A stretch of DNA of 64,000 bases, from the NCBI GenBank assembly GCA_904063045.1, contig CAJFCJ010000020.1:426916-490915 (forward strand), read 5' to 3'. This document shows positions 20,962 to 45,598 of this stretch, piece after piece. This DNA comes from Dimorphilus gyrociliatus. Taxonomy: Eukaryota; Animalia; Annelida. Position numbers and translations under genes: made by a program. The first letter of the stretch is position 1; the number at the start of each line of letters is the position of its first letter. Below the pieces are notes generated by a model that worked only from the letters and a program-made list of their open reading frames with translations, made no database searches and had not been told where the DNA came from.

Positions 20962-23900
20962 TTAGAGATCATCTTCATTCTTCTCTGAAGGCAATGATAT
21001 ACTTGTATCAGCTGTCGGTACTTTAAGCCTATTTGATAGTTTAGACGCTCTTCTTTGAGCTATTGCAAAGCTTCCTGCTTGCGATGCTTGAGAGTCTCTC
21101 CTCTGACTCCAGATACTAGATGATCTGGTTAGGCTTTTATTTTTTTGATCCATAGCCATCTGAGTAATCCTCCTAATACTTACCTCGGCTTTGTGCTTTT
21201 TCCAAGCTCGTTGCAAAGTTCTAGCAGCTACATCTTCTTTTTTCCTTCTCATTGTAGTTGTCGTTTGAAGGAATTGTACTCGTGTTGGGAATTGTTCCTT
21301 AAATTTGCTCTCCATTTGTTGTTTAAGTTGTTGGAACTCGTTGGTCACTTCTACTTCTCCCAAAACATGACGAACCAATGCAATAAGTATATCTAAACAA
21401 TGGAGACGGTCTCCTTCCACAATTGGTAAGTCGAAGGACACTAATGCTATTTCATTTGGCTTAGAAATTCCTAAAGGTGGATCTAAATCACCCACAAAGT
21501 CCGACAAATGTTCATATTTAATAAATTGGGTAGCATGCGGATCATACTTCTCCCAAACCATATAAAACATGTCAAAGTCATCTTCGGTAATACCAACCTC
21601 TTCTTGATCGTGAGCTTGGTGGAAATTTTCAAGTATTATAGCAATGTACATATTAATTATAATTAAATAAGTGATAAATATATAGGACACCATAAACGCA
21701 ATGGCAATAAATGAATTGGAGCAATTTCCCCCATTGGTCTTTTCCCATCTACCATCCGGCCTTTGCCAATGGGTTGTATTACAATCAGGAGCCTCCGATA
21801 CCAGCATGGGATACAAAACATCATTCCATCCAGCCGCCGTTGTTAAACGGAACAGCAGTAACAAAGCATTGGGGAATGTTTGAAAGTTCATAATGTCGTC
21901 AATATGATCTCCATGTTTAATTTTCCCAAATTGACTCATACCAAAGATAGCATAGATAAACATAATCAAGAATAATAGCATAAATATGTTGAATAAAGCT
22001 GGAAGAGATATTACGAGGGCGAACAATAATTTCCTTATTCCTTTTGCAACTTTAATAAGTCTTAGAACTCGGCCAATTCGGAATACTCTTACTACTCTTA
22101 ACAAAGTTGGATTTATGAAGACAGATCGAAGAACATCCGATAAGACGACACCTAAAAGAAAAGATAGCAAAAATTTTATATTATGTTATCGCTTGTTGTT
22201 CGTAAATGATAAGCATTCATTCATTCACTCGTTCATTCATCTTTCTTCTCTTCTTTAGACGCCATCGAAAAAAAAAACTAAAAAACATATAGCACTTTCA
22301 ACAAAGCAACAACAACATTTAACAATTAAACCAGTACAGTTTGTGAATTGCTTATAACGTGTACTTAACATACATAGGCTGTAACAATCTTGTTTGTTTC
22401 ACAATTGCAATAAAAAATATTGTACTTGTAATAGTGCTTGTATAGTGCGCCACCTAGTGATATAAACTTAAAAGATTTAAGAAATTTTAAATACTTGTTC
22501 TTTTTCAATTCTTTTTAATGCATAAAAGTTATTTTTGTTTTTTTTTAAAAAAAACAAAGCCAAATTTGAAAAAACAAAGAAGTGTAAAAAAATTTCCATT
22601 ATTGTATCAAAGTCTCTTTTTTTATAGGGTAAAAAATATAGAAAGAGGCTATTTTGTTATTCTCTTCTTTTCCTTTCAATAGGAAAAGGAAAAGAAAGAA
22701 ATAACATTGAGAGATTAAGAAATTTGAGAGAGAGAGAGAGGAATAAAAACACAAAAATTCTAAAAAATAAAAACAATAAAAGACGTTTAATGTTTACAAA
22801 TATACGTTCAAAGCATGTTTTGCGGTGAGACAACTCTTTAGTATATATATATATATATTTCTATATATATATATATATTGGTATATATACAAACATATAT
22901 ATTGATATGTACAATGACAAAAAATTGTATAATTACCAGCGGCACTATCTGCAAAAATTATAGTGAGGTATATATTTTCTTATGTATATCTTTTCGTTCA
23001 TTTGTTATATTTTGCTACTTAATTATATACTGTATATATATACAGATGAAGGTAAAAATATCTACTATATACTATATACAAATAATATGCTAAATTTGTA
23101 TAGAATACCATAATTCTTTAAAAGCATACAAGTTAAACTATCATACAAAATAGAAATGAAAAACAGACGAAGATGTTGAGAATCATTTATAGTTGACATT
23201 ATCATGACGGTAGTAATAGCTCTAAATTGAAAGATTCATAAAAGTAAACACATCCTTACCAACTATTGATAAGACAACAATTATAAAATCGAAAACGTTC
23301 CAAGCTCTTCTAAAGTAATGCCATCTTAAACCGAATATCTTTACTGCAGCTTCCAAAGTAAATATTGTTACAAATATTAAATTAATAACTTCTAAAGCAT
23401 CTGTAACTGCTTGAGATTGCTTGTAGTGTTCAATTGCCATACAAAGCATGTTTAATAGAATTAGCACTACAACAGCTAATTCAAATTTTGTGCTAATAGC
23501 AACATCAAAGATAAAAGCTTGAATTTTATGCTAAAAATATAAAGACAAAATGATATGTTAATCGTTATGAATTACATAATACATAAAGTTGTTTTTTTCA
23601 TAATTATTATAATTAACAATAACCTTTGGGCGTTTAATGGTTTTCTGAGGTTTTTTATTGCCGAGTTTCTTCATTGTATTCATGTAATTCTTCTGACTTG
23701 AAGTTAGAAACATATCTAAATAACTGCCTTCGTACTGACAAAGGGATAATAAATCAATTATTAGTTGATATTTAAAAGGAAGATAAGTAAACTTACTTTT
23801 TTCTTGAGCATATTAAAGTTATCAATAATAACACCAATGAATAAATTCAAAGTAAAAAACGATCCAACCAGAATGAATACTACAAAATATGCATAGTAGC

Positions 23901-26900
23901 CTAAATTATTTTCTCTAATCGGTTGTAAGTCAATCTAAAATAAAAATAATACAATTAATAGCAATAACAATAATAATAACAATGATGAATAATTGAAAAC
24001 AAATGAAATAATTTGTTACATCAGTTGAGTCTACGGCATCCTCCATAATTTCCATCCAACCTTCAAAGGTCGCTACTTGAAATAACGCTAGATAGCCGTG
24101 TAATACATTATCAAAATGTATTGGAGCATTTTTCCATCGTAGACCTTCAGCAAGACATGTCTTTTTGTCGGGTATATAGGTTGTATTTGCTATTTTCACA
24201 TCATTGCTATCAACACATCTGTAGAACTTTCCGCCGAGTAGCTAATTATTAAATTTGCAGAAAATTTTAAATACCAAAGAATTATTAAATACAATATGTA
24301 TGATATAATACCTGAACACCTGCAATACTGAATACCAACCAGAATACAAAACAGACTAGCAATACGTTAAAGATGGATGGAATTGCGTACATCAAAGCAT
24401 TAACAACGATCTAATTGAGCATTTTATTAGAATTTATATCATCACATACAGATTTTACGTACTCTCATTCCTTGCCATCGCGATATAGCTCGTAAAGGTC
24501 TTAAAGCTCTTAATGTTCTCAACGATTTAAAAGAGGAGATAGACGATGCACCAATTGAGTCAGCTGCCAAACTGATAATTGATATCTGTATAATAATGTA
24601 ATAGTTTATTGATAAAAGAATTCGTCTAATGATGAAAAGTTTTAAAAATGATTAATTATTATTACTGACCACAACAATAGCAAAATCTAAAAGGGTCCAA
24701 AAACTACTGAAATATTTCTTAAATCCAATGGCAACCCATTTAAGTAACATTTCAACTGTGAATATTATTACAAAGATAATATTTAAATAGTATAGAGCAT
24801 CCTTTAATTGCTTTCTATCCGGGTCATCCAGGTATACATCCTCAAAGCACTTGAAATAATATGACAAAAAATATATTAATTAATATTTATTAATTGATTA
24901 ATTTTGAATTCTTACCAGTGAAATACTACTTGCAAAGATAATAAAGAGGATTGTATATTCAAATATTTTATTCTCTGTAATCGTAAAGCATATTTCCCTC
25001 ATCTTATTCCACTTCGGTGCGTGTTTAGAATTTTGAAGAGTATTGCATAATTTTATTCTGAGAAAATTGTAAAATATTAATGAATTTCTTAATCTATATG
25101 ATATATTTAATTAAATTTAAAGAGGAAAGATAAGATAATAAGCTAGGAAAGAGTGAAAGAGAAAAAATCGAGTCTTACTTTGAATAGCATATTGCAGGAC
25201 AACAGTCTTGTATTGCTTTGTCTTGTTCCTCTTCCTCTTGTTCGTTTCTTCTTCTTTCCTCCTCAATTTCAAAAATAGAACGAGGTGTACTACTCGATTT
25301 TGCGTCCGTATTCTCCGAATCGTTAGAATTTTCTATCTTGCTCTGTTGTAGGCTTAGAAACAATTTACTCTTTGTGCTTTTCATCTCTTCATTATCCTGG
25401 TGGACAGAACCATTCGCAGGGGAAGACTGTGGTTGACTAGTATCTAAATCACTAGTTGGAGTGACTTCCCCATTTTGTTTTGGTTTATCTTTACTAGTTT
25501 CTGTAAAAATAATTAAAGCATTTCAATTGGTATGTGTAGAAAAAGAATAAAACGGAAATAGAGATAATGTTTACCGTCAACGTTCGTGACAGATACGGAC
25601 GGAACTAAATTGTTTATGGACGAAGAATCAGTTACGTTAAGCTTTTCACTTGATTTTGAAAGTTGATTCTGTCGTAGGACCTGTGCAATATCGGCTACCG
25701 ATAACTTTTTTGGCTTATTATTATCTGGTTCGACGGATCTCTTTTTAAATAGAGATTGAATTCGTTTCCAACCCTGTCTCATCCTTGAATCCTCTTTAAC
25801 ATCCTGGTCTCTCTTTAGGGAATCGCTGGCGAAAGAGTTGAGCAAGAGAGCAAGGAAAAGACTCAAAACCATAAAATTACCCAAAATTAATGTTGGCATA
25901 AAAACAACCATACAGGTTTGTCCAGCCGCTCTCATACAATCCCACAAGGGTTCTATCCATTCCCCACACAATATCCGAAAAACTAGGATAATTGAATGGC
26001 CAAAATCGTCGAAATTCCATCTATATAATATAAATTGCAAAGAAGAAATATATATATATTATTTGTATGTTAAAAAACGGAAACAAAGGAATAAATAGAA
26101 ATCGATATAATTAATCAAAGATAATCTTTGTTGAAAAGCGATTTTTAAATGCATATTTTTTTTGCTATAAAAAAGGTGGAGAGGAGGAGAGAAAGAAGTT
26201 ATTATTGTAATTGTCGCCAATCAATAAAGATATTTTATTCATTGACTATATCAATAATTACCTTGGTTTCTCATCTGGATAGAATTTACTGGGTGAGTAA
26301 CTATCTCTAAATAATTGCATACCAATTACTGCAAATATATAGATAACAATGCATAAAATAAGCGTCAAATGTCCCAACGCTCCAAGAGTACTTAGGATAA
26401 TCTGAAGTAACATTCTCATTGTCTGCCATGTCTGAGCCAATTTGAATACACGTAACAAACGGAGTAGACGAAAAGTCCTAATTACACTTAAGCCTTTTAC
26501 ACTCTCGAGTCCTAAATCAATGATACTGGCAATTACCACAACAGCGTCAAAGAGATTCCAAGCCGACTTGAAGTATACTTTGGAGTAAGCGAATAGTTTT
26601 AATAGAGCCTCAGCTACGAATATTGAAGTAAATATATAGTTGGACACTTGAAGAGTCAAAACGTAATGACTATTCATTTCGTGATGTTCTAAAGCCATAA
26701 TTAACGTATTAGCCAAAATACAAATAGTGATGAATATTTCAAATATAACATCGGAGACAATTTTGAAGAGAAAATTTTGTATTCTCAGCCACGTTACAAA
26801 ATTCGAAGAGCAACATGTCGAGCAGCACTCGCAGTTTCTATCTAATAGTTCATCATCCGAATCAGCATCTATATAAAAGAAACAAAAACCAAAACATACA

Positions 26901-29900
26901 ATTTATAGATATTAATATATTCCGTATATTTCTATATTAAGTACATTAAGCATTTCAAAAAAATGATTATAAAATATAATTTTAACAATACTTATTAATA
27001 AATTAATTAATCAATTAATTAATAACTTTTTAATTAATAATATTGTTTGCTGTGATAAAAAAAGGTAACAATTTAAGCACTGCAAGATGTAAATTTAACT
27101 TAAATGAAACAACCAAACAAACGAAACAAAATAATAATAATAAAACAGCACATCATATAATTAGCACAATAAGTAATTGATTAATCTTATTATTCCTCTT
27201 GAAAACTGAATCGCTAGATAACGTTATTGAATAAACATAGACCTACTGTCTTCCACTTAATTTTAAATTTAACATATTACTTTTAATTAATTTATAAATT
27301 ATTCATAATATTCTCTAATCGATATTTAAGATAATCTAATATATACATATATAAATTTATATACTGTATATATAGATATTAATTAAAAGCTAGAAATCAT
27401 ATATAATTATAATTCAATAATAAAAATTGTTGGTTAGTAAACATGAAACTGAAATCAAGAAGAAAAATAAACAGCAGGTGAAAAAATAGCGGTCTGTGCT
27501 TATTTTTATTCTACCCTTTATTTCTTTATGAATTAAAATTAGAAATATAAATATATACATTCTTATAGAAATTATTATCATTAATCTATTTATTTATTTA
27601 TTTTATTAATTTTTATATTTTATGTTTCTAATTTTATAAAATAAGAAGCAAAATTAAGATTATAAAAAGCTCATTTCATGCAAGAAAAAACTGCACCTGA
27701 ACCGAGATCACTGTCTTCGTCCGAAGAAGTTGCTGTAGTGCGACATAGAAAAAAGCTCAAAAAAAAACAACAAAGTAAATAAAATGATACCAAAGATACC
27801 AAAAATATAGAAATAAAATAATTAAGGAAATCATATATAATTCTTTTGTTTCTTTTTTTCTTTATATAAAGCAGAATAATAATATTCTTAGTCATTTGCG
27901 AACAAAAGATGGCGTTGTAGTCTATTTGCTTTTATATTATCCATTAAAATTATATTCGATTTCCATCCCATTTATTAATACTTAGTGTATATATAAAAAC
28001 CTCGTATAAAAATTTATATAACGGATATATAAATATTTGAAAGAATTTTGAAAAGTTGGAAAAATATTCGGTATACCATATAATTCACTGATGAATGAAT
28101 AGTTTTTGTTACCAATATGAATAAAAAGAAAAGACAAATGAGAAGATTTCCTAGGATAGAGTGCAATTTTTGAAAAAATTAAATTTAATATAAAAAAAAA
28201 ACTGAATAAGTTATTAAAAAATAAGAATTTAAAAAAAATAATAAAGTAACCGGGTGCGATAATAGTAAAAAATATTGAATGAAAAAAATGGAAATATTGA
28301 ATGAAAATAAATAAAAAAAAACATTCAGAAACTAAATGAAACCTTTACATTTTATAATATAATTGGTTCGGGAGTCTGTAGATTCATTTTTCTGCGCTAT
28401 TAATAAAAACAGCGTACCGAAAATTTATATTTTATTAATTTAAATTTTATGAATATTAATATTTTATATTTACATATACTCGTACGATAATACACAATAT
28501 ATATATATATATATATATATATTGTATATAAACGTATATATAAATATAAAACAGTTAACTTATTCTTATATTTATTTATTCATCAATTTTTTTTTCTTCT
28601 CTTTCTTAATTTTTTTCTCTATTTTTACATTTTATTTCTAATCCTTTTTATCTTTTTATATTATTAATATAAATATTTTTTTTTAAAAAAAAAAAAGAAT
28701 TAAAACAATGAAAGATGTAAAAATAATAAATAAATAAAAATTAAAAAAAAAAAAAGGACGTCTTACACAATTATTTTTTTTAATACTTTTTTTTATTCTT
28801 TCTTTTGTTTTTTTAAAAAAAAATATTTAACAATTATATCTAATATTAAGATATATTATTTACTTCTGAAAAGAATCTTCTTAATAAAATGATAAAAGAA
28901 GGAAAAGAGGGAATAAAGTTTTACAAACCTCTTATTTTTACTTTTGGAATTTTTTGGGTATGGGATTTTTTCTGTTTAGAAAGAAAAAAAATAAATTAAG
29001 AAAAGATTGAGGAGTGGCATTTATAATGAAAGGCCTAAGTATTTATCGAACGCGAGAAATAGAAATTATAACAAAGGTCATGGACGCTGTTAATAGTCTT
29101 TAAAAAGACAATAAGAGATAAACAAATACCTTTTCTCCATCAGTCTTATTGAATTTACTATCGTTATTATCTGCTTTGTCTAGCTTGTCATCACTACCCA
29201 TACCAGAGTCCATAGTACCTTGATTCTTCATTCTCTCTTTTCGTTTGTCTTTAGCAGATTTTTCAGTATGCGTATCATCATCTTCAGGCTATTAAATTGA
29301 AAGACGAAAAAGGATTGAATATGTTAATTGGAGTGATTAATTTTCGAAAAGAAAAAATCATTCACTTTAGAGTTAGGAGTTGGCTGATCTTTTTCAGTAG
29401 TATTTTTAATTTGATCTTTCTCCTCACTCTCCTCGTCATTCTTCTGAGCTGACTCGCCAACAGTTTCATCAGCAGTAGAAATTTTAGATTTTTCTTTTTC
29501 GCTCTCTCTTTCCTTTTCCTGTGAGAATACACCAGGACGCTGAGTTAATCATTCTTCAATTCCTTATCAATTATTGTATAAAAATTGACATATATTGTGC
29601 TAAATCATGCACGATAAAAAAAATTTACTCTTTGATTTATCTCTTAAAACATTTAAACTAAACTTCATTTAGCATGCTTATTTTTTTCTCCAATTGTTAT
29701 CTCTATTATTTATAATTCATTCAATAATAAAAGAAAGGAATAAGGAAATATAAAGTTTCCCTCTCTTTCTACTTTTATTATCCTATACTTTCCCACTCAC
29801 TTTATAATTTACAATTCACAATTCTATTTCTTCTTTTTTCTTTTCATATTAAAATCAATTGTAATTAAAAAAAGAGGAAGCTACTCTTCTATATATAACA

Positions 29901-32900
29901 CATATACTTTATATATACAGTATATACACATATATATATACTGTATATATAAAGTATATAAACAAACGTGAATTTTTCATTTAAATATGTCATTTTGTGA
30001 CCAACATACGCATTCTATAAACTTATCTTTTGCAGACACTATTATTATAATAGATGCAAAAATTATTCAAAATATAAAAAAGGCGGGGTCGAGGAATGGA
30101 GGACATAGGTCATAGCTCAATACGTAATAATAGTTATAATGTTTAGAATAACAATAAGTAAGTATATGCGTTAATAATATCATGCTAATCAGCTTCGTAG
30201 TAAATTTATACGTACATATGGTAAAAAAGAAACATGAAGATCTAAATCCTGTCATAATATTCGTTTACTATTTATAGAATGAAAATTGTGTTTGGCTACA
30301 AATAAGTGAAAGGAAGAAGAAGGTTAAACAAACCTTTCCGGCGTTCTTCGCCTCCTCTTCGTAGGCCATTGATACAACAGCTAACATCAAGTTGACCAAA
30401 TAGAAAGATCCAAAGAAAACGACGAATATAAAGAAGACTATATTCCATGGTCCGTTCGCGTGAATAACTTTATTATAAGGATCTTCCCAAAAATCTAGGG
30501 TGATTAGTTGTAATGAATTGAGCATAGACCATCCGAAATGGTCGAAATTCGTATAGCCCCAATTAGGATTTTCTCCTATATCTGGTAAGCAAGTGTAATT
30601 CGACGGACACGCTCTAGATTAATTAAATGAAAAAAATATATTTTTGGATAACATTCCTATTCATACAAAAGCAATCTCTTGCATAATTCAAAGTGATGTT
30701 TGCCTACCCTGCACTACTTATGTTGCCACATATGAAATATTGACCTTGCTGATCGATCTGCCAATTGGACGAATTCTTTATATGTAAGTCATAATCTCCA
30801 TGTGAAATAGGATAAATTGGGTCTTTAACGCATTTTTGCCTTAAAACTCCCAAATATACTTGCAAACCAAACAAGGCAAACACCACCATACAGAACGAAA
30901 TGAGTATAATGACTTCAATGATCATGCGCATAGACTTCAATAAAGCACCAATAATAGTCTTGAGATCTGTAATTCGAAAATAGTGAAGTTAGTAATTTGA
31001 AAGAATTCGCTAATTATTTAGGCAAGCATCTTAGTCTTCCCGAAAATACCCGGATATAAAGACTTTTGTTTGCTTGTTTGCTAAAAAAATTTAGGACAAC
31101 TTTCTAAAGTAAATAACTTTAATAGAAACAAATCGATACATTCTAGAAATTGAATGTAATGTTTTTTGAAAGGTGATTAGGTACACGTTAATATTTTTAT
31201 AACATATATATTTAGCTTAGATTGATCTGTACCTGGCACAATTGAAACCGTTTTCAATATTCTGAAAACCCTAAACGTTCGTAGACCCGCGATACTTCCG
31301 ATATCCAACACTTTAAGCGATTCGAGTATTATCGTTAGATACCTATAAAACAATTAATATATATATACAGTATATACATATGTATTTATATATAATTATT
31401 AAATAGTTTACTCTATTTAATTCTAATTTTACTTACGCGCTGACTATTACTAAAAAATCAAGCCAATTCCATCCATCTCTCAAGTACGTAAATCTATGTA
31501 CAAAAAATCCTCGCGCTGTTATTTTAATAATTGCTTCCAATGTGTAAATTGCAAGAAAGACGTACCTATATTTTTTTTTAAAAAAAAAGAAGAGAAAATT
31601 GAATAATCAGTTATAGAATCAATTATACTAGACGTTTTATATCTTATTGAACAAAGAAAATAATTATTTTTTTTGTTTTGGTTAATTAGTTGTCAAACGG
31701 CGTCTCTGTCTATTTTTTATTATGAAACAGTAAAGTTTAGACGTATATGTACTTTGGTATATTTTAGATCAATAGAGTTTCAAGAAGAAGAATATAGAAT
31801 GAAATTATAAGAGTGTAAAGGAAGAGCATAAGTATTAATTAATTAGGACTGTCTATGAATATTAAACAGAGTTGAAGGCCGAATTTAGTTCTAATGGCCG
31901 CAATTGGAATGGGAAAATTCGTGTGAAATCCAACACTGGAGTTGTGTGATGGATGATTGCGGTGCAGCAGCGATTTCGAACTGCGTTTTTATTGCTCCAT
32001 CTATATAATATTACAAAACCGCGTACATAGAAACTATTAGAGAAATTGCCTATGAAAGAACGTAATTTTGTCAAAGCCGACCCATGGGAGATAGCGACAT
32101 TTTGCAGAACGTTCAGTTTTTGTAGTTAATTGCTTCGGCTTCATAACAGCATTACCCTAGTAAGCTTCTCTTATATAGATAATTATTTTCCATTCATTTA
32201 CTCCGCTTAGAAGAATGATTAATAGGGACCATATGTTAAATTGAATACCATCAAAAAAGAAATCTTATCATCTCTTTCTTGTAAAAATCTTATACATGCC
32301 CTCCTCCCTTCACTCATTAAATAAATAACATTTAATAGAAATTTACTTACTCAGCGATTCTTGTCGTCTGATTCTCATTCAGTGCGAGAAAGACGCAATT
32401 GACGAGGATGGTCAACATGACAAAATAGTCAAAGTATTGGTTTGTAGCTATATAAATGGCCAATCTGCGAAACGGATTCCATGGACTAAATATAAAGAAG
32501 GAGTTGGTTGCCGAAAATCGGAATATTGTATTTCTTTTGAAGCGTTTTGCAATTACGATGAAAGTCTGTGGATAAAAAAATAAATATAATTACTATGCAT
32601 AATAAGAGAATTATACATTAAATAATTTTATTTAATAAGTTATGGCTATGAAGAACGAAAAGAAAAAGAAAAGTGACGCACACAGTAGTAATTACTTTTA
32701 GGTAGACGCCACAATTTTTTTTTAAAACAAAACGACGTCTCCTTTCCGTTAGTTTTCTATTATCCTTTTAAAAAATATATACATTTTCTTTCTTTCTATG
32801 CGTTTGAAAATATATGAATTCTTTTTGTCTGTTTCACTCTATGAATTATATATTATAACATTTTCTTGAAACTTATTTAATTATGTAAACTATTGTCAAT

Positions 32901-35900
32901 TAAAAGCCTTGTTATAGTCAACCGCATTGGAATCATACGATACTTACAATCAACTTTCCAAATGATCCTACCACACGTAATTATGTCATTTACTTAATAC
33001 TAATAGTACAGTTAATGATAGGGGAAAAACTCTATGATTCCTTTACAAATACTTCGTCAAGTTTTCAAAAAGAAAACACTCAATGATAGAAGGATATTAT
33101 TATTTTTGTTCTATCGATATTCCGTATACTTTTTAATCGCTTTTTAACATTCCTTCATTTTATGTTTCATATAATAAAATTATTCTACATTTGTTGCCTA
33201 TTTTTTCATTTTTTTACGATATACAATATATATTTTAGACATATGTATAGTTTTGCCTCTCACCCCTGGTTGTCGGGGAGGAAATTCGAGCTCTGGCCAT
33301 GTACAACCGCACCATTGAACAACGTCACCATCATCATCTGTAGTTATCTGTTCCATATCCCAGCCTGCCCTCCGTTTCCTCTTTTTTCTTTCCTTTGTCG
33401 CTAAAACTGTTTTTACCTCTTTACCGACAACTTTAACTTCCATCTCTTCGGGACTAACTATCGGTGGTACGTAATACGAAGGAGATTCAACTGGTATCGA
33501 TATTATTTTATTGTTGTCATCTTCTTCTGTATTTGTAACTTGAAGTTCAACGTCTGCAAATCCATCTGTTAGTTTTGAGGATTCATCGCAATCAATTTCC
33601 TCTAAAAGATCCGATCTCACTGAGCTAAGTTCAAATTCCATACTGGCTTATTCTCTATTTAAACTATAAGCTTTATTCATAATTTACAAACGCCAGTTCT
33701 TCTTGCCAACTTGGTTTTTTTTATTAACGATTTCTTGTTTTAAATGTATCGTTCTCTTTTTTAATAAGTATTAAATAAACGAATAAGAAAGAGTATATTT
33801 TCCTCTATTTATTGTCTTCTTATTTATCCGACGTGACAAACTCCGGCGACTGCCCAAGCGTCGACTTATAGACGGCGCTGGACGTCCATGATGTATATCA
33901 TCAGAAACAATAAGTTTTAGAAGTGATCATTGATTATTGCCTGGTTAATGAATGAGCGTTACAAGCAGATCCAGTTCACATTGATCTAGTTCTTCAACAT
34001 GTTTGTTAATTTGAGCTTAATTACTAATCATATTCTCACTTCTAGCTTTTTTTGTGCTCAACTCTGCTTAATTAATATTCTTAAGGCCTATTTACTTACT
34101 TAGCACTTTACAACAGCTTGAGTATATATTTTTCTAAATAATATAAACTAAATAGCTATCTCGTCAGAACGTCGCTGCCGCCGCAAACATTGTCATTGTT
34201 GGAAAACACCACCGCCGAAAACCAGTCAGCCCTTAACCGACGCATCCGTTATCATCATAAGTACTTATGCCCGCTTTTTCACTACTCCCCCAACTTTTCC
34301 ATGGAGAAAAGCTTTCCCCTAAACATTTCACCATAAACCCTCAACTTGTATTCTCGCTTGTTATTCTTTTTTTGTCCATTTTTGACAAATATTTAACGAA
34401 AAAAGCGAAAAGAGGGAATAGAGTGTTTACAATCCCCTTGTACAAGCGTAATGCGTTTTTTTTTTTCATTGGTTTGTCCCCCTTGCCAATCTACTTTTCA
34501 TTAAACAGACAAATTATGAACAATGTCGTTGTACAAAGCATATATGGAAAATTATTCAAATGTATGCCGTATTATTGTCGACTAAAAGAGAATATATTTT
34601 TAATATTGTTTTTACTAATTAGTAAGTAAATAATAAGAAAATTGAATAGAGGGAAATGCATTCATTTTCTTCCAATGAGTCAGTAACGATATATACATAT
34701 ATATATATATATTTGCCAAGAAATAAACAAGTACGGAGTGCCTATAAACGAGTAATAAAATAAAAAGAGCATTGAAATCTCTATTTTGATTTATTGTGGA
34801 TACAAAAATCGATTTTTTATTAGTTCAGAAAGGGCCTCTCGACTAACTGTTATAAGTAAAAGTGTTTAAGGCTCCCTCTTAGCGTATTTGTTTAAATGGG
34901 CATATATTTTATAATCCGTCTAAAGTCGCATTTATTCTTTTCATTTCTATAACGTTCCAATGTACGTTCGATAAGTTTTATTCAATAGTCGCACGCACTC
35001 TGTCTCATTCTTTAGCTCTTAAGATCCTCCTAATTATTTGTTAATCCAATAAAATTAATATATTTCTATGATACATATTTTTAAAATATTTATTAAAAAT
35101 AAATATATATATATATATATATATATATTGCTCCCAATGTAAGCCTAGTTGAAATTAATGCAGTGTATAAATGTATATTTAGATATCTATTCATAAATAT
35201 AAATTTATATATATATATATATATGTATTATGAGAATACTTTATACTTTTTAATAGATACAAAGTCTTTGATAAAATTAGTTTTAATTACCTAATTATTT
35301 ATTTCTAACGTGGATTAGTTTTCATTTTCAATATTTAATATTTTTTTTTATAAAAAAACAAAATATTTATATTTCTCCTACATTACTTAGTAAATATATA
35401 TAACTATGTAAACAAGCGGCAACTCTTAATTGAACAAAATATTGTTTATTTAGTCTGTACCAGACGTAAGAAAAAAATGAAAAAAAATGGACAATTGGAA
35501 AAGAATTCCAGTTGCTCGGCAATTTCAATGCAATTTTTCGTTCTTTGATATAATCTAGTTTACACTACCGACCAGCCTGTACTTGAGTTTAATTTATAAA
35601 GTCGGCTAGGCAAATATATTGTAATATGTTTTCAAAAATCTTGGAATATTATTAATAGTAAAATATAAATTATTAAAAAAAGAACCTTTAAAAAAAAACA
35701 ATTGAAATATTTTAATCTATTAATATAAAATGTTTTTAATGAAAACAAAGACTTCATTAAACTAATCTATTGATAATCATATTTCAAAGAAAAGGATCAT
35801 TTGAGAAAATTAATTAAATATAAACTTATAAATTGGCGTCCAACAATTAATTAACTATTGAAAAAGAAACGTCTCATCTTCAATTGGATACTGATTTAGA

Positions 35901-37247
35901 GTCGCTACATGTAATAAGAAAATGACGTAAAATGAAACTGCATTTAATGACAATCTTTTATTCAGACTAGATCCGATTATCGATCTCCAATACCTTCACC
36001 ATGGCACTACTATATGCTTATACGTATTGGTTATAGAAGTTAGTTCAACAATCTATAATAAGACAGAACTGAACAGAACAGAGCTTTTTTCTTAGTTTAG
36101 CACTAACATATTATTTATATCTATGTATAATGAAAATTTTCGCAATGTTTCTCTCCCCGAGTACTTTATTGATTACTACAAGTCGGTTTAATATATCAAG
36201 TAAAAAGTCTATTAATAATTTCTGCATGAAGAAGTCACTTTGATGAATTCATTTTATAGAAACAATCGTCACATATCGAATTAAATCCATAGGGAAGAGG
36301 GAACAACTAAAAATCAAAAGCAAATATCTCGAATAGCAAATGCCAAAAGAGTTGTTCGTATAGATAATTAATACGGTTATGAATCCATCTAAATGATTCT
36401 TCAAACATCGCAAAAAGATATAAAAGAACCGATTGAATAGGGTAAAAAAATGACATAAGATAAAATAGACTAGAAATCAGGACGCATACAAAGAAGGAAG
36501 AGATAAAGGAAGCAAGGATGAATAAAAATGTTAAATTAATTGAAAAAAAACCGGCAATTTATGAAAGTTTGCTGACTTTACAAATAACGCTTATGGGCGT
36601 TGACTAATCAATAAAAAAGGCGTTTTTATTCGAAAAAAAACTTTTTTTAATTCTTTTTCAACTCATACATATGCATATATATATATTAATCTATACATAT
36701 ACACGCATATATATGAAAATTTATTCACCATTACTTTAATTGCCTATTATAAACTTCAAAGCGGACGATACGTTATTCCTCTATGCTATAGTTAGCACCT
36801 TAGGCCTACATTAAAAAATTCGTTCTCTGACGTAGGTGAAAGAAGAGATTGTACATATACATTAATAAAAAAAGCGATCAATTAATCGACTGAATATTTT
36901 TTGTTAAAAAATACTTTAACGGAATTGTAAATGAAGAGAGGAAAAGGAAGAATTTTTAAAATGGGTAAGAGCGATTGATATAAGGGTTTCTCTTAAAAAG
37001 AGAAAGGGAAAAGAGGTTAAGAAATTTATAAAGACCCATGATAGAAAGAAAGGAAAGGGATAATACCTAAGGAAATGCACTAAATTAAGTGATTTTTCAA
37101 CATTTAATAAGATTTCACGTGCTAAATTATTTGTTAAAGAGAAGAAAGAGATATTCTCTATTCTTCTAAGTTTAAAACTGAAACGTCTAGCCAGAATGGA
37201 AAGAGAATGGTGAGAAATCATGAAAAGCTAACGATCCACATTTAATA

Positions 37248-37288
<41 letters not shown>

Positions 37289-39246
37289 GTATACAGAATA
37301 TTCTATTTAAATTAATCATTATCCTCTTTTTCTTTCTTTTAAAAATTAATAAAATTTTAAATTATAATCTCTTTCTTCTTTTCTTTTACACTTATACAAA
37401 GAGACAAACTAAATGATATTACGTCTATCTATACATAGCTCAACCCTCTCTATTCTTTTCTAGGCCATTTGTAATCAATTTGATTCTATAACTGTCTTCC
37501 TATTTATTTGTATTTTATACTGCAAAATTTCTGAAGAACTTGGTTAGCCTATCAAGTAACAAAGAAAAAGTAAATCAATAATTAAAAAAGATTGATTTCT
37601 TCGAAACGACTGCTCGAATCGCTAGGATATCGTAATGATCACATTACGACATGATTGAACATGATTCAAAAAAAGGGGTGAAAAAGAAGGAGAATATAAA
37701 AAGGTGTAACTAGAAGTTTTGAAGAGGGTACAAATTAAAAGAGATTTGTTTATCATTTCTTCAATTTCTCATTGTTTATTTGAGTTTTATTCATATTTTA
37801 ATATTTGTGAATATAAAGGAAAATATGTCTAATAAGATTTTATAAAGCAAGTAGAGAGTTTCAATATGTTTCGTAAATAATCGTTCTCAATTTTCAAAAG
37901 GAAGTTATGAAACGCATATGTTTTGTAAACTGTTTCATGTCTTTTATTTTTTATCTGACAAATAGGCTGGACCTTAAGGAACGAGATCTTTAGGAATGTT
38001 AAATCTATTCCCAAAGGTATATCCCTGAAGCATAGATTAGAGGATAATCATCATTATTAAAGGAACTGTATTCTACTCTGTTTTAAAGAAAACTTGCAGA
38101 GTTCTTTAATCTGTTAAAGTCTATTCTTATAGAAGATTAACGAAAGGAATAAGGGTAGCTATTTGGCACTTAGTATTAAAAAAAGTGGGTGTGGCTTCAT
38201 ACCTAAAAACAAAGACTATGATATACGGAATAAAGATATAAATTATAGAAAATAGGAACTTGGAGAAGATTGACAAGATTCTGTGAGAGAAAATGAAAGG
38301 AAATTCACAAAAAATAAATGAGTAAAAGAATAACACTAGTGACGTAAATATTTGTAAAATTACAAGACTCTCTTTCCTGGCCGTATATTGAGGCCAAGAT
38401 TTCTATTCTCATTAGCTTTATACCGGTTGCCATAAAATTATACAAGCCGGTTAATCCCCTGTTACAAAAGATTAATAAAATAATGTGATTGAACGCAATT
38501 GCGGCACCTAGGTAATTATTGACACGCGCATGTATAAACAGCATCATATTGCAGTATTGGTATGCTTTACGACAGACTGCAAAAAAATTTTAAACTAAAT
38601 ACAGACGTTAATTTTAAAATAACAGTCGTATAGAATGTCATAAATTAATAGGTATAATCCAATGTTGCTCAGTTGAACTGAACCATCAGCAGTAAGTGCT
38701 TTACACCTAAATAAGGGGCTTTGTTAGCGAAAAATGAAATTTTAACGCCATAGATCTATAGGGATAGATATAAATTATTAAAAGGCTTGCCTTATAATGG
38801 AGATAAGGGTCAATCTCTTCCATTGGTACTCCATAACCATCCTCTGGAAATAAGTTTCCATACTGATCAGGTAGTGGGTTTCCTTCGAATAGCGCTAAAT
38901 CTCTTTCTGGAGGGGGATCCTTACTCCCTTCGTCATTACCGAATTTCAATTCACCATCAACAAGACGGCCTTCTTCATGTTGATTTTTTCGTTCCTTTTC
39001 TTCCTCTTCCCATTCAAGTACTTTCTGTTCAAGATTTATTCGGGATTGAGTACCAAAACGACGGAACACTGAGCTCTCTTTATCCAAGTCTTCGTTTACA
39101 TTTGTGCCAGCAATCGACGCGGATGATTCGGCTCTTTCTTTGAGCGTATTATTGTCCTCCAGGTCGCAGGCACCTTCATCTCTCTCATCCTCGGCCGGTA
39201 GGACATTAACTGTTGGGGGTCTTGGTAAGGTTGGTTTATCCGTCAT
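20962..39246 (-). CDS. Voltage-gated sodium channel alpha subunit of the Nav2 (DEEA, BSC1/DSC1-like) class, about 1884-1914 aa
   Basis: Exons: 39246-38791, 32565-32351, 31565-31437, 31342-31233, 30966-30708, 30613-30334, 29518-29366, 29288-29130, 28971-28929, [28396-28343], [27732-27697], 26868-26262, 26020-25575, 25500-25179, 25057-24916, 24849-24670, 24585-24463, 24410-24312, 24241-24020, 23934-23797, 23734-23624, 23530-23260, 22151-20962. All phases close. Pore loops TLDFWE / CGEWIE / TFEGWM / TAAGWN give D-E-E-A. Four S4 segments. III-IV linker [26 protein letters not shown]-terminal EF-hand-like region and IQ-like [13 protein letters not shown]. Confidence 0.97.
22447..22459 (-). promoter_or_regulatory. 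CTCF-consensus-like motif CACTAGGTGGCGC in the last Nav2 intron
   Basis: 13/13 match to CASYAGRKGGCRS on the minus strand. Confidence 0.35.
33264..33641 (-). CDS. Putative alternative first coding exon (1b, 126 codons) of the Nav2 channel
   Basis: ATG at 33641 with an in-frame TAA three codons upstream. The frame is open to CCA GGG|GTGAGA, a canonical donor at 33263 in phase 0, which matches the phase-0 acceptor at 32565 (TFIVIAKR). CpG-rich patches lie upstream at about 33830-33890 and 34160-34255. Confidence 0.7.
33830..34260 (-). promoter_or_regulatory. Candidate internal promoter/5' UTR region for Nav2 exon 1b
   Basis: Locally GC/CpG-rich segments (cgtcgctgccgccgc; ccaccgccg; ccggcgactgcccaagcgtcgac) inside an otherwise AT-rich 6.2-kb intron, directly upstream of exon 1b. 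Inference only. Confidence 0.4.
37249..37284. repeat. (TA)n microsatellite; similar runs at about 7211-7235, 35103-35128, 45603-45630 and 46168-46201
   Basis: Read directly. Confidence 0.9.
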
Positions 39247-39710
39247 CTTAAGACGGCAAATTTGCCGTTCATATTAAAATTTCGAACAACGTCGTATCCT
39301 TTTTTGATAAAAGTAATTGACCTTTAAAAAGTCGCTGCTCTCAAAAATTCCTTACTTTGTTTTTTTATTATTCAAAATTCCACTTGGTCTCTCTGATTAA
39401 TAAAGACAATATTCTACTAAATATTCACAAATTGAGTTTAACGTGTTTTGTCTTGTTAAATTTTTTTATCCTGTCTTTTTAATATATCTTTTATCCTAAA
39501 CAAATGAATTATCTTCTTCAACAAGTAAAGCAGTATAATATTATCGAAGCCAAAATCGTGACCAGCAAGTAAAACCTGTTGTTAATCGTTAGCCTAAAAG
39601 CACCTTGTGGTTTATGAATGAGGATATGTCAATGTCCATGGATAATCGTAACCCTGCTGCTTTAGCGACCAGATAGTTTTCAGCCAATCAACACCCAGAG
39701 CCTTCTTTGG

Positions 39711-39723: not shown

Positions 39724-41126
39724 GCCCCATCTTATTCAAAACCTAACGTTCTACGTAACACTAAATTGAACAGATATGCTTAAAAAGAATTTCCCAGACA
39801 CTATAAATTCCCATAGTTAGGTGAAAAGGCATTTTCTTAAATACAAATGGTTAATAAAAGGCACTGATATGAATGACTTATTAAATTGCTAAGTGATCTT
39901 GAACAGGTAGAGGACACCTTCAGCCACACCCAAGCAATTATTCCCCTCGCTATCTCACTAATATTTATTCAAGATAGCAGCATGTAGAAAAAGGCGTCAC
40001 CTTTACAAATGTATATATCGTCTATTGCCCTGAATTAAGTGCTCGTGAAAGTATGGTGACTTTGAAATTTAAGTCATTAAACGAAATATCATTCGTTGTT
40101 CTATGCTCCTTATTTATTAAATATATAATGCAGGCCTATTTAATTCGTCTATAACAAGTTAAATATAATCGTGTTATATACATCTGTATATATTTTGTTG
40201 TTGTTTACTTATATGACTTTACTCATAGAACTCACATTTGGACGCTATTGTTTTGTAATTCAAACTGTTTTCGAGTGCAAATGTTCAAAAAGGTTTTCCT
40301 TTCATAAACGTAGTAATGTAAAATAGATGTGTTTAGTTTGACTGATTGAATACAAAAATTTTTATAAATGACTATTACTCATAATACTAATTTATTCATG
40401 AAATTGCATTTACTCGTATAAATGTATCTCTTGTAAATGTATATATAATCTATAGAATGGAATCAATCTCTACTCTAAAAGCACTGTGTGTACATTTGTT
40501 TCAGTTATGTACCCGTGTATATGTAGAAAATAGAGGGCGCCTCTATTTATCTCTCCAGAGATGGTCTTTGAACAAGAAATACGTTTCCTTTTTTATTTAT
40601 TATATAGTTAGTGGATAAAGAAAAACACACAGGAACGAGGAGATAATCTTCCTCTTTTTTTTTTTTGTTCTATTTTTACAAATAGTACAAGTATATGTAT
40701 TTAAAAAAAACGTTAAGCAGTTTCATTCCCTTTCTTCTTTCTTAGTCCTTCGTATTTTGTTCTTCTTCTTTCATTATCTATGTTCTTATATATCCTTTTC
40801 TTGAAATATAGAGAAAAAAAATCAGTTTCTTAGATGAGCATATTGAAATTTTTTCTCTTATTTCTTCTTTTATTTCAAATTAGGAAAATTCTTTGATTTC
40901 GGTTTCTTAGCAACATTGCAAATTCGCATCAGTCTCATTACAAATGATAAACGGTCGAGAGAGGTATCCTCCGATGACCAAAATAATAAGAATCGTGCGC
41001 CTTCTCGCCTCGGACTCCTTCATGAATTTACAATGAGGATGGGAGAGAGAGAGAGAGAGTTTTGTGAGTGGAAAATATATTGAAGGAAAGACTGCTGTAG
41101 ATAAAACAATATGAGTAAATGTAGAT

Positions 41127-41468
41127 TCAAAGTTTTCCATAGTCGTATCTTGGCTTCTCCAAACTATTCAAATGAGCAGACGTAACAAAAGTAGATGGTC
41201 TAGTCGGTCTTATTCTTCTATTAACCCTTCTTCTTCTCTTTTTTATTCTTCTTGATAATTTTTTCACGCGTCGTGGCATTCCATAGATTGGGGTTGGCGA
41301 TGCTACTTGAGACAGTTCTCCTCTGACCCCATTTATCTGAGCCAAGCGTCTTCCCATAGGCCTAAAGTCTTCAGCGGAACTCTCTAACTCTTGAAATTGC
41401 TTCACAAAGATTACCGAAATAAGAAAAAAAAATACAACTGCATAAATTCTATTCCTCGAAATGCTCAT
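41127..41468 (-). CDS. Small orphan protein (113 aa from ATG 41468): N-terminal hydrophobic signal or anchor, GRR site and a very basic segment
   Basis: Part of a 147-codon ORF that is relatively GC-rich. Sequence: MSISRNRIYAVVFFFLISVIFVKQFQELESSAEDFRPMGRR...PRRVKKLSRRIKKRRRRVNRRIRP...YDYGKL*. A possible 70-nt intron at 41164..41095 would give an alternative C-terminus ending at 40907. Confidence 0.55.
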   Translation of the reverse strand: MSISRNRIYAVVFFFLISVIFVKQFQELESSAEDFRPMGRRLAQINGVRGELSQVASPTPIYGMPRRVKKLSRRIKKRRRRVNRRIRPTRPSTFVTSAHLNSLEKPRYDYGKL

Positions 41469-44400
41469 TAACAAAAACAACTTATTCAAAACGGTTAATC
41501 TTGAAAAAACAAGCCATAAATCTGTTGATAGAAGCCGTTTAAACCGAATGGCGTATTTACGAGACAACAACGCCGTCTAGCGTAAAAGCGAAATCCAACC
41601 CGACTTTGGTGATTAGCTGTAGATGACTGATTGCCATCTGGGAATTGTCTATGTTTATTCAATTTCTTTTCTTTTTCATGCAACTAACGGAGGGAGGAAA
41701 AATTGATAGAAAAAGTAAAACAGAAAAACTGGAAAAATAGGAAGAGTGGCAACTAAAAATTTATTAGACACTCATCCGTAGGCCTACTAAAGCTAGTTTT
41801 ATTATCGAACGCTTAAAAAACACGAGCATTGTCTAAGTTTATTTATAAAAGTAACATTCGCAATAACGACGTTGATGAATATTGATATTTGCGGTGATGT
41901 CATCGCTTATAATATTGCATATTGCTAAATTTACCATTGCCGTTAACCTTGTTATATATTACTTTTTCCTTTGTAGAGTACTCGCTGATTCTTTATCCGC
42001 ACCTATCCAACCTTCTCATATCTTCTATTCTCTTTTTCTTTTTTCTTTCAACTCATTTCAGTTTTCAAATCTTTTCCTTTTCCAAAAATATCTTGTAGTT
42101 TAACCTTCAACTAAAAATATAACAAAAATTTATATAGAAAGATGGGCGTTACATTTGTTGATTTTATAGAAGAATAATTTAATGCTATTTTTTATATCAT
42201 AAAAGAACTAAAAAGCGTCCTTTTATCATTATGGATATAGTATACATTATACGTAATCGTCTATGTATACAATATACAGTAAGTTTGTCTATATTTTTCC
42301 TATGTACAGTATATATCTTAGCTGTACGGCGTTCTTTTTAAATATTCACGAACGGCTTCAATTAAAACCCGTCAACGTCCGCAACGGCTGGGGGGCGCAT
42401 GAGGTACATACATGCATATATAATATTCTTTTATACGATTTACATATATATTAGTAAAGTATATATTCTACAATAAAGGATTAAATTACGCTCGCCTCCT
42501 ACAAGCATGTAAGTGTCAATCAGTCCAAGTGATATGTCAAGCGAAGCACGTGACGACGTCTATGAGAAAAAATATTTGAAAAGAATATAGGAGAGGTCTG
42601 GAAACGACGGAGAATCTCTGAAAATAACTAATAGGCTTTACAGAAGCGTAAAGGAAATAAATTAGCTTGTTTGGACAACGGAAGAAGAGAAAAAGGAAAC
42701 GACGTTTGCAAGCATAAATTCACTCTCTTATAACAAGTCTTTAAGTCAAAGGAAAAAAGAGAGAATGGAATGAAATGTCTTTACTAATCGTACTCTCTTC
42801 ACTTTCTTTCTCTCTTTTTTTATTCTCCACTATCCAATGCTGTTTGCTAGTAGTTTTTTTTGCATTATTCACTCAATATCTCTTGTAAAAATTAGGCTGG
42901 GTTGAGGGGTTACTTTTCTCCCTTGAGTATGGGGCCCTACTCGCACTCTAATTCATTACGTTTTGCCAACTGTGCCAACCCGCCGTGGCTTATTCGAAAA
43001 TAAGGCTCTTTCATTTCCTATCTGTTTCATTCTAATTTACGCACTTCATATGCTCTCTTCTCTCCAGTCAAAGAGACAAACAAAATACTGTATGAACTTT
43101 TCTCAGCTTCTGTTCTGTAGCCCCTCCCCTTCTTCATCTTATATCGTTTCTTTGAAAAGAACGTTAAGCAAATTATAAAGACAAATGCCACGTGATTTAA
43201 TATATCATTTTAGCCCCATTACCTTTCCAACCGAAAAAAAATGTTTATAATCGTTCTAATGGATAAAGTAGTCCGTTTGATTCGCGTGAGTTGTTCAATA
43301 GACCGAAACTATATACAGAATCCAAATGCACACACGAGCTTTTCCTGTCAATAACATTTTACGGAACATTATCGATTTAGAGGCCGCTCTCCATGCCATT
43401 TACAACCCACCAAATACCCTTATACCCCTCCTCTACCACTCTTATCTTCAATTCTTTTCCAGAGAAAAAAATCCCCTCTATTATTTTAGACGAAAGACGC
43501 TCTTGACAAGAGGAAATAAATAGAAAAGATACTTTCAGACGTCAACAGCAGGACAAAAAACTGGGATCCAAACCAAGTAATAAAGAGACGGCAATCAATC
43601 GTTTATAGTACTAAAGAGAACGCTCCGCTTGACAAAATTATTGGCGATTGTCGAAATTGGCTTGCTGTCCGATTGCGGTCTTTTATACCCGTTTAATCTT
43701 ATTCTCTTTATTTCCTTTTTATTATTTTTTCTTCTGTTTTTTTGTTTCACCCTTGACCTTATTACGTTGAACTTTTATTTTAGACTTTTCTCATAGCATA
43801 ATAAACGCTCGTTTTCTAGTCTCCTTTGTAGATTTTAAAAGTTCCTTTCCGCCTTCAGACAATCAATATGTCGATTGGTTTCCCACCACAATTTACAATA
43901 TTATTACATCCGATTGCTATTGACATTTTATATATTTAGGCCATTTAATTTTTGTTTTTGCTCTTTTGTTTCCAACTATATTGAATAAACGATATAGCAC
44001 ATCATATTTTATTTTTCATTAGTATTCTGCTTATTAGCGATTATCAACAGATGGCGCTTAATACTAGATCAATTTAATACAAGCTTTCCCTCTCACGTCT
44101 TTAAAAGGAAAGCAAAGAAAACAAACGAAATAATAAAACAGAATGTTTCTTTTACTCAATTTCAACCATCTTCATAGAATTGTCTATTAAGGAAAAAAAG
44201 ACAGAATATGTTTTGGGAACGCTTAACGGTGCGTTAAGCGAAAGACGCCCAAGCGAGACTGACGTCCAATGCATTTAAAGTAACTCATGTAATGAAATAA
44301 AAGCACTAACCTTGAAATTGTGAACTTTTTGCGAATATTAAACGAATTGTACAAGTATTAGCTTGACTATCTAATTATAGTAATTTTGAATATTTATCAT

Positions 44401-45598
44401 ACTTATTTAAAGCTTTTAACAGGATCCCACGTGACCTTATTTGAGAAGTATACGTTAGATTACGTTCTTAAAGACGCTGTCGATCTATAATGCATGCAGT
44501 CAATTAATCACACAACATCGACTTTAAGTGCATTACACTTCACTTCATATAAGGATTATTTATTTTGTTACCTTATTTAAAAAAATCCACCTCTTTTCTC
44601 CCTTTTCTTGTAAACTTTAACCCAATTTTAAAGTTATTTCCGCTCCATATTTTGCTATTATGGATTTTGTCTATCGGTCAAAAAGAGAACGTATTATTTT
44701 TCTCAATAAATAATTTAGAAGACAAGAGCAAAGTGGGAAAAGAGTATTAATTAATAAATCAATAAATGAAGAGCATAAGCTTAACAATCTATGTATCGTG
44801 ATATATTATTAGGTAAATCAAACAAAATAAACTCAATCAAAATAGACAAAAAGCAGGAAAGACAATATAAAATAATGTATATGTGTCATAGAAGTTATAA
44901 TACAAGGTTAAGATGCTATATCTTGTAATAAAGAGGGGATTTGAAACTAGGTAAAAATCCTCCTATATATTTATATTTATATTTAGTATGAAGAAAGGAT
45001 TATATAAAATAAATATAAAACGAGAATGATAAAATGATGATTTGTCTATCACAAAAGACCTTTTAGCGGTCTGCTATTTATGATTATACAATAACCCGTT
45101 GAAAATCCATTACTTTGTCATTTAAGGGGGGGAGGGATTGAATCGAATTTCAAATGATCTGAATATACGTATTGATCGTTTTTAAAATAAGAATCATATA
45201 AAAAAAATGATTTATATTATATTATATTAATAAATTATTAATAATAGGTAATTATGTAATTTACAACTGAAAAATTGCTCATAACTGGATTATATTACAA
45301 ACGAATCAAGTTTTGCAATCGAATTGTTATCTTTGTAAATATTGAAATATCCTGCGATCTATCATTTTATAAATTTCCTATAGAGATTACTCACTCTATT
45401 TGATTGATGAAATAATAGAAAAAAGCTTGAAATTTTACTATTTCTCTATCTATCTATCTATCTATTAATAATCCTCTTTTAAAACTAACACATCGGGTTT
45501 TCTATAGAATGGTTGGCAGCAAATTGGAAGAGGAATTTTGTATTTATATAAATTAATTGGAAATTGAACATTAGTGGTGATAATGGGAGAAATTATCA

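Follow-up and report, generated by a model that had tools for sequence, protein, structure and literature searches.

In this study, we found that the first intron of the Nav2-type channel gene of the miniature marine worm Dimorphilus gyrociliatus harbors a conserved open reading frame, here called exon 1b. It probably serves this gene as an alternative first exon that codes for protein, so that two N-termini are predicted for one gene. In the proposed mechanism, transcription of the second form would start inside this 6.2-kb intron, probably within or just 3' of a conserved block at 34033-33803, and its translation would start at position 33641. The GTGAGA donor at 33263 would then be spliced in frame to position 32565, the acceptor of the constitutive exon 2 (junction 33264->32565). 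By this, the first 152 residues of the Nav N-terminal domain would be swapped for a lineage-restricted segment of 126 residues, whereas everything from exon 2 onward, including its share of the N-terminus and the entire channel core, would be the same in both forms; the two may differ in trafficking or regulation. The two N-termini are expected to be mutually exclusive because exon 1b has no usable acceptor.

Identity of the channel gene

The window, which is the whole 64-kb stretch of DNA analysed here (assembly GCA_904063045.1), carries a four-domain channel gene on its minus strand, and all of the features described below lie on that strand. The main part of the gene (domains I-IV, the D/E/E/A pore and the C-terminus) was placed at 20965..32350 by translated exons and by profile and protein matches; the places 31363-31403 were left out of the database searches on this region. 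In the translated exons, the pore letters of domains I to IV are T-L-D-F-W-E, C-G-E-W-I-E, T-F-E-G-W-M and T-A-A-G-W-N, giving D-E-E-A, and Ion_trans (PF00520) matched a part of each of the four domains with E values from 4e-12 to 2e-42. The last exon matched Nav1.7 with an E value of 1.6e-121, compared with about 4e-51 for Cav1.2 and 4e-21 for NALCN. Exon 2 gave 16 near-full-length matches at 62-69% identity, of which two were named insect "sodium channel protein 60E", the best named match; the others that carried a name were unnamed insect proteins. Nav2 channels are defined by a selectivity filter of D, E, E and A in domains I-IV, with no lysine in II or III (PMC6259924). On the translated sequence, the pore, the four Ion_trans domains, the better match to Nav1.7 than to Cav and the 60E matches confirm that the gene is of the Nav2 type, as the preliminary description of this DNA had proposed; in sequence it lies nearer to Nav than to either Cav or NALCN. 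The database gene calls fragment this channel gene and miss some of its exons.

The Nav2 channels include DSC1/NaCP60E of Drosophila, BSC1 of the cockroach, CaV4 of the honeybee and the Nav2 channels of cnidarians. The D. gyrociliatus channel resembles them in its four Ion_trans domains, its D-E-E-A filter and a sequence closer to Nav than to Cav.

Exon 1a and the first intron

The coding part of exon 1a (38791..39246) starts with the ATG at 39246, ends at 38791 in phase 0 and encodes the canonical Nav N-terminus in 152 codons; on re-reading the sequence, both the coordinates and the nature of this N-terminus were as previously described. Its end coincides with an intron position common to insects and a distant annelid-like genome. 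The donor at 38790-38789 is GC, not GT (AAG/GCAAGC), and the related species has AGG/GTGAGC at this place; the GC donor was absent from the preliminary description. Exon 1a is 84% identical to that of the related species (dN 0.098, dN/dS 0.08) and 39% identical to that of the distant genome, and weak colinear matches to the N-termini of Nav1.5, NavPaS and Nav1.8 were obtained. The canonical Nav N-terminal domain is conserved from annelids to insects.

The first intron measures 6.2 kb, whereas the median intron of this species has 66 bp, a roughly 94-fold difference. In the genome paper of D. gyrociliatus, regulatory introns were noted to be the large ones, and trans-splicing and operons to be absent (PMC7854359). 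We suggest that this intron is long because it contains functional sequence.

Structure of exon 1b

The coding part of exon 1b occupies 33264..33641, with 126 codons from the ATG to the donor. The ATG at 33641 lies in a good context, with A at -3 and G at +4, and an in-frame TAA is found 9 nt 5' of it (33650-33648). This TAA, conserved in the related species, is also the stop of a 10-codon upstream ORF (33648..33680), which that species has at the same place and with the same length. At the 3' end, the boundary is GGG/GTGAGA, with the donor at 33263 and the coding part ending in phase 0; if left unspliced, the ORF extends to 33198 (147 aa). Coordinates, ATG, upstream stop, donor and phase all agreed with the preliminary description. 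The first 80 residues of the encoded peptide are acidic and are followed by the polybasic KERKKRKRR and by a last part of 46 residues with W-C-G-C-T-W. The GC content of exon 1b is 0.41, that of exon 1a is 0.44, and that of the flanking intron is 0.25-0.28. When the 6.2-kb intron was simulated 1000 times by a Markov model, 149 or more consecutive codons free of stops arose in 5 cases, and the length of the ORF by itself is thus only moderately unusual.

Exon 2 (32351..32565), common to both forms, encodes the pre-S1 segment and the start of S1, and its donor is GA/GTAAGT in phase 2. Its acceptor at 32565 (cacag/ACT) is strong, with 13 pyrimidines in 17 positions, and the phase 0 ends of exons 1a and 1b both match it. 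As exon 2 ends in phase 2, a transcript in which exon 1b skipped to exon 3 would lose the reading frame. The intron between exon 1b and exon 2 (32566..33263, 698 nt, 25% GC) is essentially unalignable with the related species except for one 70% patch, and no conserved ORF was found between the exon 1b donor and exon 2 when the window was compared with that species.

Inside exon 1b, no in-frame AG is preceded by more than 9 pyrimidines in 17 positions, and no AG of any phase between 33700 and 33290 reaches 12 of 17. The earlier statement that exon 1b is not an in-frame internal cassette was borne out, as no plausible acceptor lies before or inside it. We rejected the in-frame cassette and also a poison exon, given the lack of a credible acceptor and a dN/dS of 0.11, which is not expected of a non-coding exon.

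Conservation and coding constraint of exon 1b

Four genomic contigs of the related species carry the exon 1b ORF, which is 82% identical to that of the window. The 66 nucleotide differences are distributed 15/7/44 over the three codon positions. Substitution rates, calculated by NG86 between the window and the related species, were dN 0.093 and dS 0.83, giving a dN/dS of 0.11, and the two off-frames gave 1.1 and 2.0. Selection on exon 1b is hence comparable to that on exon 1a. The last 46 codons, which adjoin the donor, are almost invariant (dN/dS 0.05), and the sole indel is of 3 nt and keeps the frame. The two species share the donor GTGAGAGGCAA, with the donor and 5 further bases unchanged, and the alignment fades about 25 nt 3' of it. 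The read-through stop lies 5 codons past the donor in the related species versus 21 in the window. The distribution over codon positions, the dN/dS, the 3-nt indel, the identity of the donor and the loss of alignment beyond it show exon 1b to be a true coding exon, in phase with exon 2, whose end is a conserved and presumably functional donor. Together with the lack of an acceptor, they also uphold the anatomy of a second coding first exon with its own N-terminus, as had been proposed. Both the polybasic and the Cys-Gly-Cys segments are conserved in the related species, which would indicate only that both segments matter; the roles in membrane binding, palmitoylation or nuclear import that had been proposed for them are putative.

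The frame of exon 1b had been expected in relatives, and this held for the related species. In the more distant genome, exons 1 and 2 were found, and a 1b-like ORF in this intron was absent or unrecognisable; the conserved blocks and the 15-mer were not found there either. An exhaustive HMMER search of 1.84 billion protein representatives matched the exon 1b peptide only to the close relative; two other hits were rejected as tandem-repeat proteins that matched via a short low-complexity stretch. Searches with this peptide gave nothing above threshold in Pfam, no match among PDB sequences and no usable match in the ESM Atlas. AlphaFold2 modelled it with a mean pLDDT of 43, and the segment is probably disordered. 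Exon 1b was also rejected as a duplicate of exon 1a (BLASTP E value 5.6, hhalign probability 0.2%), and no second copy of it was found in the 64-kb window.

Transcript-derived proteins were found with neither of the two first exons, and the matches to exon 1a and exon 2 were all genomic read-through ORFs or proteins of other species. A protein joining exon 1b to exon 2 was absent from the databases, which says little because the product of exons 1a and 2 was absent from the same searches. Only one public sequencing run matched part of the stretch, with 35% of the sampled words.

A candidate promoter upstream of exon 1b

A noncoding block at 33803..34033, located 160-390 nt 5' of exon 1b, is 95% identical to the related species (221/232) and may be an internal promoter or a 5' UTR. 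Within it lie CTCATTCATTAACCA at 33956-33942, a TATA-like TATAAG at 33870-33865 and GGCAGTCGCC at 33854-33845. A further conserved noncoding block at 39576..39695, about 330-450 nt 5' of the exon 1a ATG, has 92-100% identity to the related species in 60-nt windows and contains the 15-mer CTCATTCATAAACCA at 39622-39608. The 15-mer is common to the blocks upstream of exons 1a and 1b, a coincidence seen in 3 of 1000 shuffles; it occurs only twice in the 64 kb and is intact in the related species. The conserved block, the TATA-like element and the common 15-mer are consistent with a second, candidate promoter. Noncoding blocks at least 95% conserved against the related species are common around the Nav2 gene, and because of this the block at 33803..34033 may instead be an enhancer. 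A non-coding RNA in this block was rejected, as the block had no match in Rfam and showed no excess of RNA folding (z -0.95).

Alternative explanations

Exon 1b could be a small independent gene nested in the intron, encoding an unspliced protein of about 130-147 residues with an acidic part and an NLS-like cluster, in which GTGAGA would simply code for Val-Arg. We consider this rather improbable. An unspliced product is possible, since the ORF closes 5 (related species) or 21 (window) codons past the donor, but neither the stop position nor the tail is conserved between the species, and similarity is gone about 25 nt past the GT, as expected of an exon-intron boundary. The database gene calls list exon 1b as a separate gene of 147 aa; this carries little weight because the same calls fragment the channel gene and miss exons. 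The basic cluster K-K-R-K presumably resembles a classical nuclear import signal, and such an NLS-like cluster would suit a nested gene; however, the peptide has neither a fold of its own (pLDDT 43) nor a family match. The strongest constraint (dN/dS 0.05) is found in the last 46 codons, next to the donor, and the phase agrees with that of exon 2, for which the chance is 1 in 3.

It also seems unlikely that exon 1b is transcribed and spliced without giving a working channel, whether through another acceptor, promoter competition or short N-terminal peptides. Among the acceptors further downstream, only the one in front of exon 2 is at once conserved, in phase and strong, and exon 2 would still supply the pre-S1 segment. 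The conserved 10-codon upstream ORF hints at translational control, and the domain to be replaced is conserved from annelids to insects, both of which would fit such an explanation; against this, purifying selection on the amino acids equals that on exon 1a, and constraint of this strength suggests that a translated product of exon 1b is under selection. A chance ORF in conserved noncoding DNA, without coding function, is very improbable. The locus is indeed rich in conserved noncoding blocks, and the length of the ORF (5/1000) is only moderately unusual, but the nearby blocks that are truly noncoding are 95-100% identical and show no periodicity, whereas exon 1b has a third-position excess (15/7/44), a dN/dS of 0.11 versus 1-2 off-frame, a frame-preserving indel and an exon-like GC content. 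Our preferred explanation of exon 1b is therefore the alternative coding first exon.

Comparison with known channels and significance

Alternative first exons are documented by cDNA in the mammalian Cav1.2 gene (CACNA1C), where exons 1a, 1b and 1c give N-termini of 46, 17 and 10 residues (PMC3634016). These N-termini are unrelated to one another and are spliced to the same exon 2; their use differs between tissues, and they alter how the channel behaves (PMC3634016). As in Cav1.2, the D. gyrociliatus gene encodes a four-domain voltage-gated channel, with a first coding exon that would be chosen among alternatives and a common exon 2. Unlike in Cav1.2, the segment has 126 residues, would replace the conserved Nav domain and is known from comparative sequence alone, and the channel is one of the Nav2 branch. 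One study on Cav1.2 reportedly described how the N-terminus affects function. In vertebrates, Nav1 genes (SCN5A and SCN1A, for example) have alternative non-coding 5' exons, which leave the protein unchanged. The D. gyrociliatus gene would be similar to them in having several promoters or first exons for one sodium channel gene; unlike their untranslated exons, exon 1b brings a start codon of its own, and selection acts on its 126 codons. A limited literature search gave no earlier description of alternative coding first exons for the Nav2 family, and the review PMC6259924 does not mention a first exon, an alternative promoter or the N-terminus. The mechanism of alternative first exons is already known, and the Nav2 gene of D. 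gyrociliatus is likely to be a new instance of it.

More tentatively, exon 1b might be a possibly de novo-born N-terminal module, under selection as strong as that on the ancient Nav domain and transcribed from an internal promoter with a cis-element in common with the main promoter, and its basic cluster and Trp/Cys motif might redirect the address or the regulation of the channel; we find this fuller proposal doubtful. The basic cluster and the Trp/Cys motif could, for instance, act in retention in or release from the ER, anchor the channel to lipids, or direct a fragment of it into the nucleus.

Nav2 channels such as DSC1 and honeybee CaV4 are poorly understood, calcium-permeable sisters of the action-potential sodium channels, and the cytoplasmic N-terminal domain has been implicated in the folding and trafficking of vertebrate Nav1 channels. 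If the proposed alternative first exon is true, D. gyrociliatus would present a natural replacement of most of the Nav N-terminal domain by an unrelated orphan sequence that has been kept under selection. It would offer a direct way to ask what the function of the Nav N-terminal domain is, and it would stand as a clear example of an ancient gene that has a young coding first exon.

Channel gene and exon structure

In this Dimorphilus gyrociliatus genome (assembly GCA_904063045.1), a four-domain voltage-gated channel gene occupies the minus strand between 39246 and about 20965. Pfam Ion_trans matched parts of each of the four domains, and the last exon gave an E value of 1.6e-121 with human Nav1.7 versus about 4e-51 with Cav1.2. 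In the translated exons the pore residues are D, E, E, A, the defining trait of Nav2 channels (review PMC6259924), and the best named database matches of exon 2 were insect 'sodium channel protein 60E' (the searches excluded window places 31363-31403). The recorded gene calls of the window assembly (locus L005; window position equals 43642 minus locus coordinate) break the Nav2 gene into four proteins (179, 147, 281 and 1226 aa) and leave out exons between 33198 and 30889; the 179-aa and 147-aa calls run through the donors.

All exon features listed in the preliminary description were found in the sequence. Exon 1a (39246-38791, minus strand) encodes 152 residues. Its motif Y-G-x-P-(M/L)-E-E-I-D is also present in the close relative, the distant annelid-like genome and an insect model, and its boundary before T/S-F-x-V is identical in all three. 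Matches of the peptide to the N-terminal parts of Nav1.5, NavPaS and Nav1.8 were weak but colinear (E 0.1-0.6). The donor of exon 1a (38789-38790, minus strand) corrects the earlier account, as it is GC (AAG/GCAAGC), while the relative has the usual GT (AGG/GTGAGC); this GC might conceivably be an assembly error. As it stands, a GC-AG intron lies at a conserved Nav intron position, immediately upstream of the putative alternative first exon.

Exon 1b (33641-33264, minus strand) begins with an ATG, with A at -3, G at +4 and an in-frame TAA nine bases before it, and ends in phase 0 at GGG/GTGAGA. Exon 2, on the same strand, starts behind a strong acceptor at 32565, and its end at 32351 is in phase 2; from these phases, both 1a and 1b join exon 2 in frame, but a junction of 1b to exon 3 would not. 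The preliminary description held that 1b is not an internal cassette, and this is supported: no AG with a credible pyrimidine tract was found inside or just upstream of exon 1b, so that it cannot be entered from exon 1a. The 698 bases from the 1b donor to exon 2 (25% GC) contain no conserved ORF and only a single weak patch of 70% similarity to the relative, and downstream of that donor no strong, in-phase acceptor in constitutive use comes before that of exon 2. A ten-codon upstream ORF (33680-33648, minus strand) ends 6 nt before the 1b ATG; the relative has it at the same position and with the same length, though half of the residues (5 of 10) differ.

Coding constraint on exon 1b

When the 1b peptide was used in a word search, a single other protein came up, P0002 (82% identity), which is encoded on short contigs assembled from four sequencing runs. 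These contigs are colinear with the window genome and continue through the 1b donor, and the same runs also give contigs of up to 8.8 kb with unspliced exon 1a, which indicates that they are genomic DNA of a related species. Over the 126 codons of 1b there are 66 nucleotide differences from this relative, distributed 15/7/44 over codon positions 1/2/3, and the sole indel is of three bases. The dN is 0.093 and the dS 0.83, a ratio of 0.11, versus 1.1 and 2.0 in the other two frames; in the last 46 codons, adjoining the donor, the ratio is 0.05, with about a dozen synonymous changes. As exon 1a showed similar values (dN 0.098, ratio 0.08), constraint on the protein sequence is equal for the two N-termini. 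The 1b donor and the next five bases are identical in the relative; past them a stop follows after 5 codons in the relative and 21 in the window, and the alignment dissolves.

This pattern is the signature of a coding exon ending at a splice donor. Judged by length alone the case against chance is moderate, since 5 of 1000 intron simulations gave an uninterrupted frame of 149 codons or more; the comparison with the relative is the decisive evidence, and a fortuitous ORF is highly improbable. The conserved coding pattern stops at the donor, and we regard a stand-alone small gene nested in the intron as unlikely. It is likewise doubtful that exon 1b is spliced into a non-channel or regulatory product, the first strong acceptor in phase being that of exon 2. 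Exon 1b is therefore best described, on the evolutionary evidence, as probably a second, mutually exclusive coding first exon of the Nav2 gene. It forms the core of the earlier proposal, in which a second promoter would make an isoform whose polybasic and di-Cys segment replaces the canonical Nav N-terminal domain, and it is this core that the evolutionary evidence supports well.

In the protein databases neither a 1b-exon 2 product nor a 1a-exon 2 product was found. As the window's ORFs in these databases derive from the genome assembly only, the missing 1b-exon 2 product is uninformative. The only public run found to contain part of 32420-33700 is X1 (2017, 60 million letters, possibly RNA), in which 35% of the sampled words occur; this figure is near the portion of the stretch that exon 1b and exon 2 together occupy, about 41%.

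Upstream conserved blocks

A block upstream of exon 1b (34033-33803) is identical to the relative at 221 of 232 positions (95%), more than exon 1b (82%) and ordinary alignable noncoding DNA here (72-80%). It contains a TATA-like TATAAG at 33870-33865, had no Rfam match and folded no better than shuffled sequence. The conserved blocks upstream of the 1a and 1b ATGs have in common a 15-mer, CTCATTCAT(A/T)AACCA, with only two copies in 64 kb (39608-39622 and 33942-33956, both on the gene's minus strand). The copies lie 300-376 nt upstream of their respective ATGs in near-100% conserved blocks, the 1a block being about 360 nt from its ATG, and are intact in the relative; the 15-mer was not found in the distant genome L009. 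A shared run of this length occurred in 3 of 1000 shuffles, for a motif chosen post hoc. We consider it a candidate shared cis-element, and together with the blocks it hints at two related promoters. Since blocks at least 95% identical are frequent around the Nav2 gene, the 34033-33803 block could also be an enhancer. Other blocks of 95-100% identity, noncoding or unassigned and exceeding the coding exons in conservation, occur at 38410-38590 (200-380 nt into intron 1) and, several of them, in 40800-44600, where some may be exons of a neighbouring gene.

The median intron of D. gyrociliatus is 66 bp (PMC7854359), so the 6,225-bp intron 1 is about 94 times the median. It was also reported that intronic open-chromatin peaks in this species are located in unusually large introns, and that its genome is without spliced-leader trans-splicing and operons (PMC7854359).

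Nature and age of the exon 1b peptide

A search of 1.84 billion cluster representatives gave no relative of the 1b peptide except P0002, two further protein matches being tandem-repeat artefacts, and there was no match in Pfam, PDB or Atlas. Nor is the peptide similar to that of exon 1a. Residues 92-100 of 1b (A-G-W-D-M-E-Q-I-T) resemble residues 138-146 of 1a (Y-G-V-P-M-E-E-I-D), the most conserved Nav N-terminal motif, but the hhalign match, over 9 columns, is not significant (E 0.31), and in 1b the segment is 26 residues more distant from the junction. AlphaFold2 gave a mean pLDDT of 43 with an alignment of only two sequences, consistent with a disordered peptide. The basic cluster KERKKRKRR is conserved in the relative, with N for one K, as is the C-terminal end of the 1b segment; palmitoylation, lipid binding, ER retention or nuclear import through these segments are guesses.

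In L009 the counterparts of exon 1 and exon 2, with 39% and 59% identity, are separated by 3.8 kb, and nothing resembling 1b or the conserved blocks was found in this interval. It suggests that exon 1b is restricted to the Dimorphilus lineage and near relatives. No report of alternative first exons with different N-termini in Nav2 channels was found in the literature searched. Cav1.2 is a documented case in which the choice of first exon changes the N-terminus (PMC3634016), as we propose for this Nav2 gene, and the mechanism of an alternative coding first exon is a familiar one.
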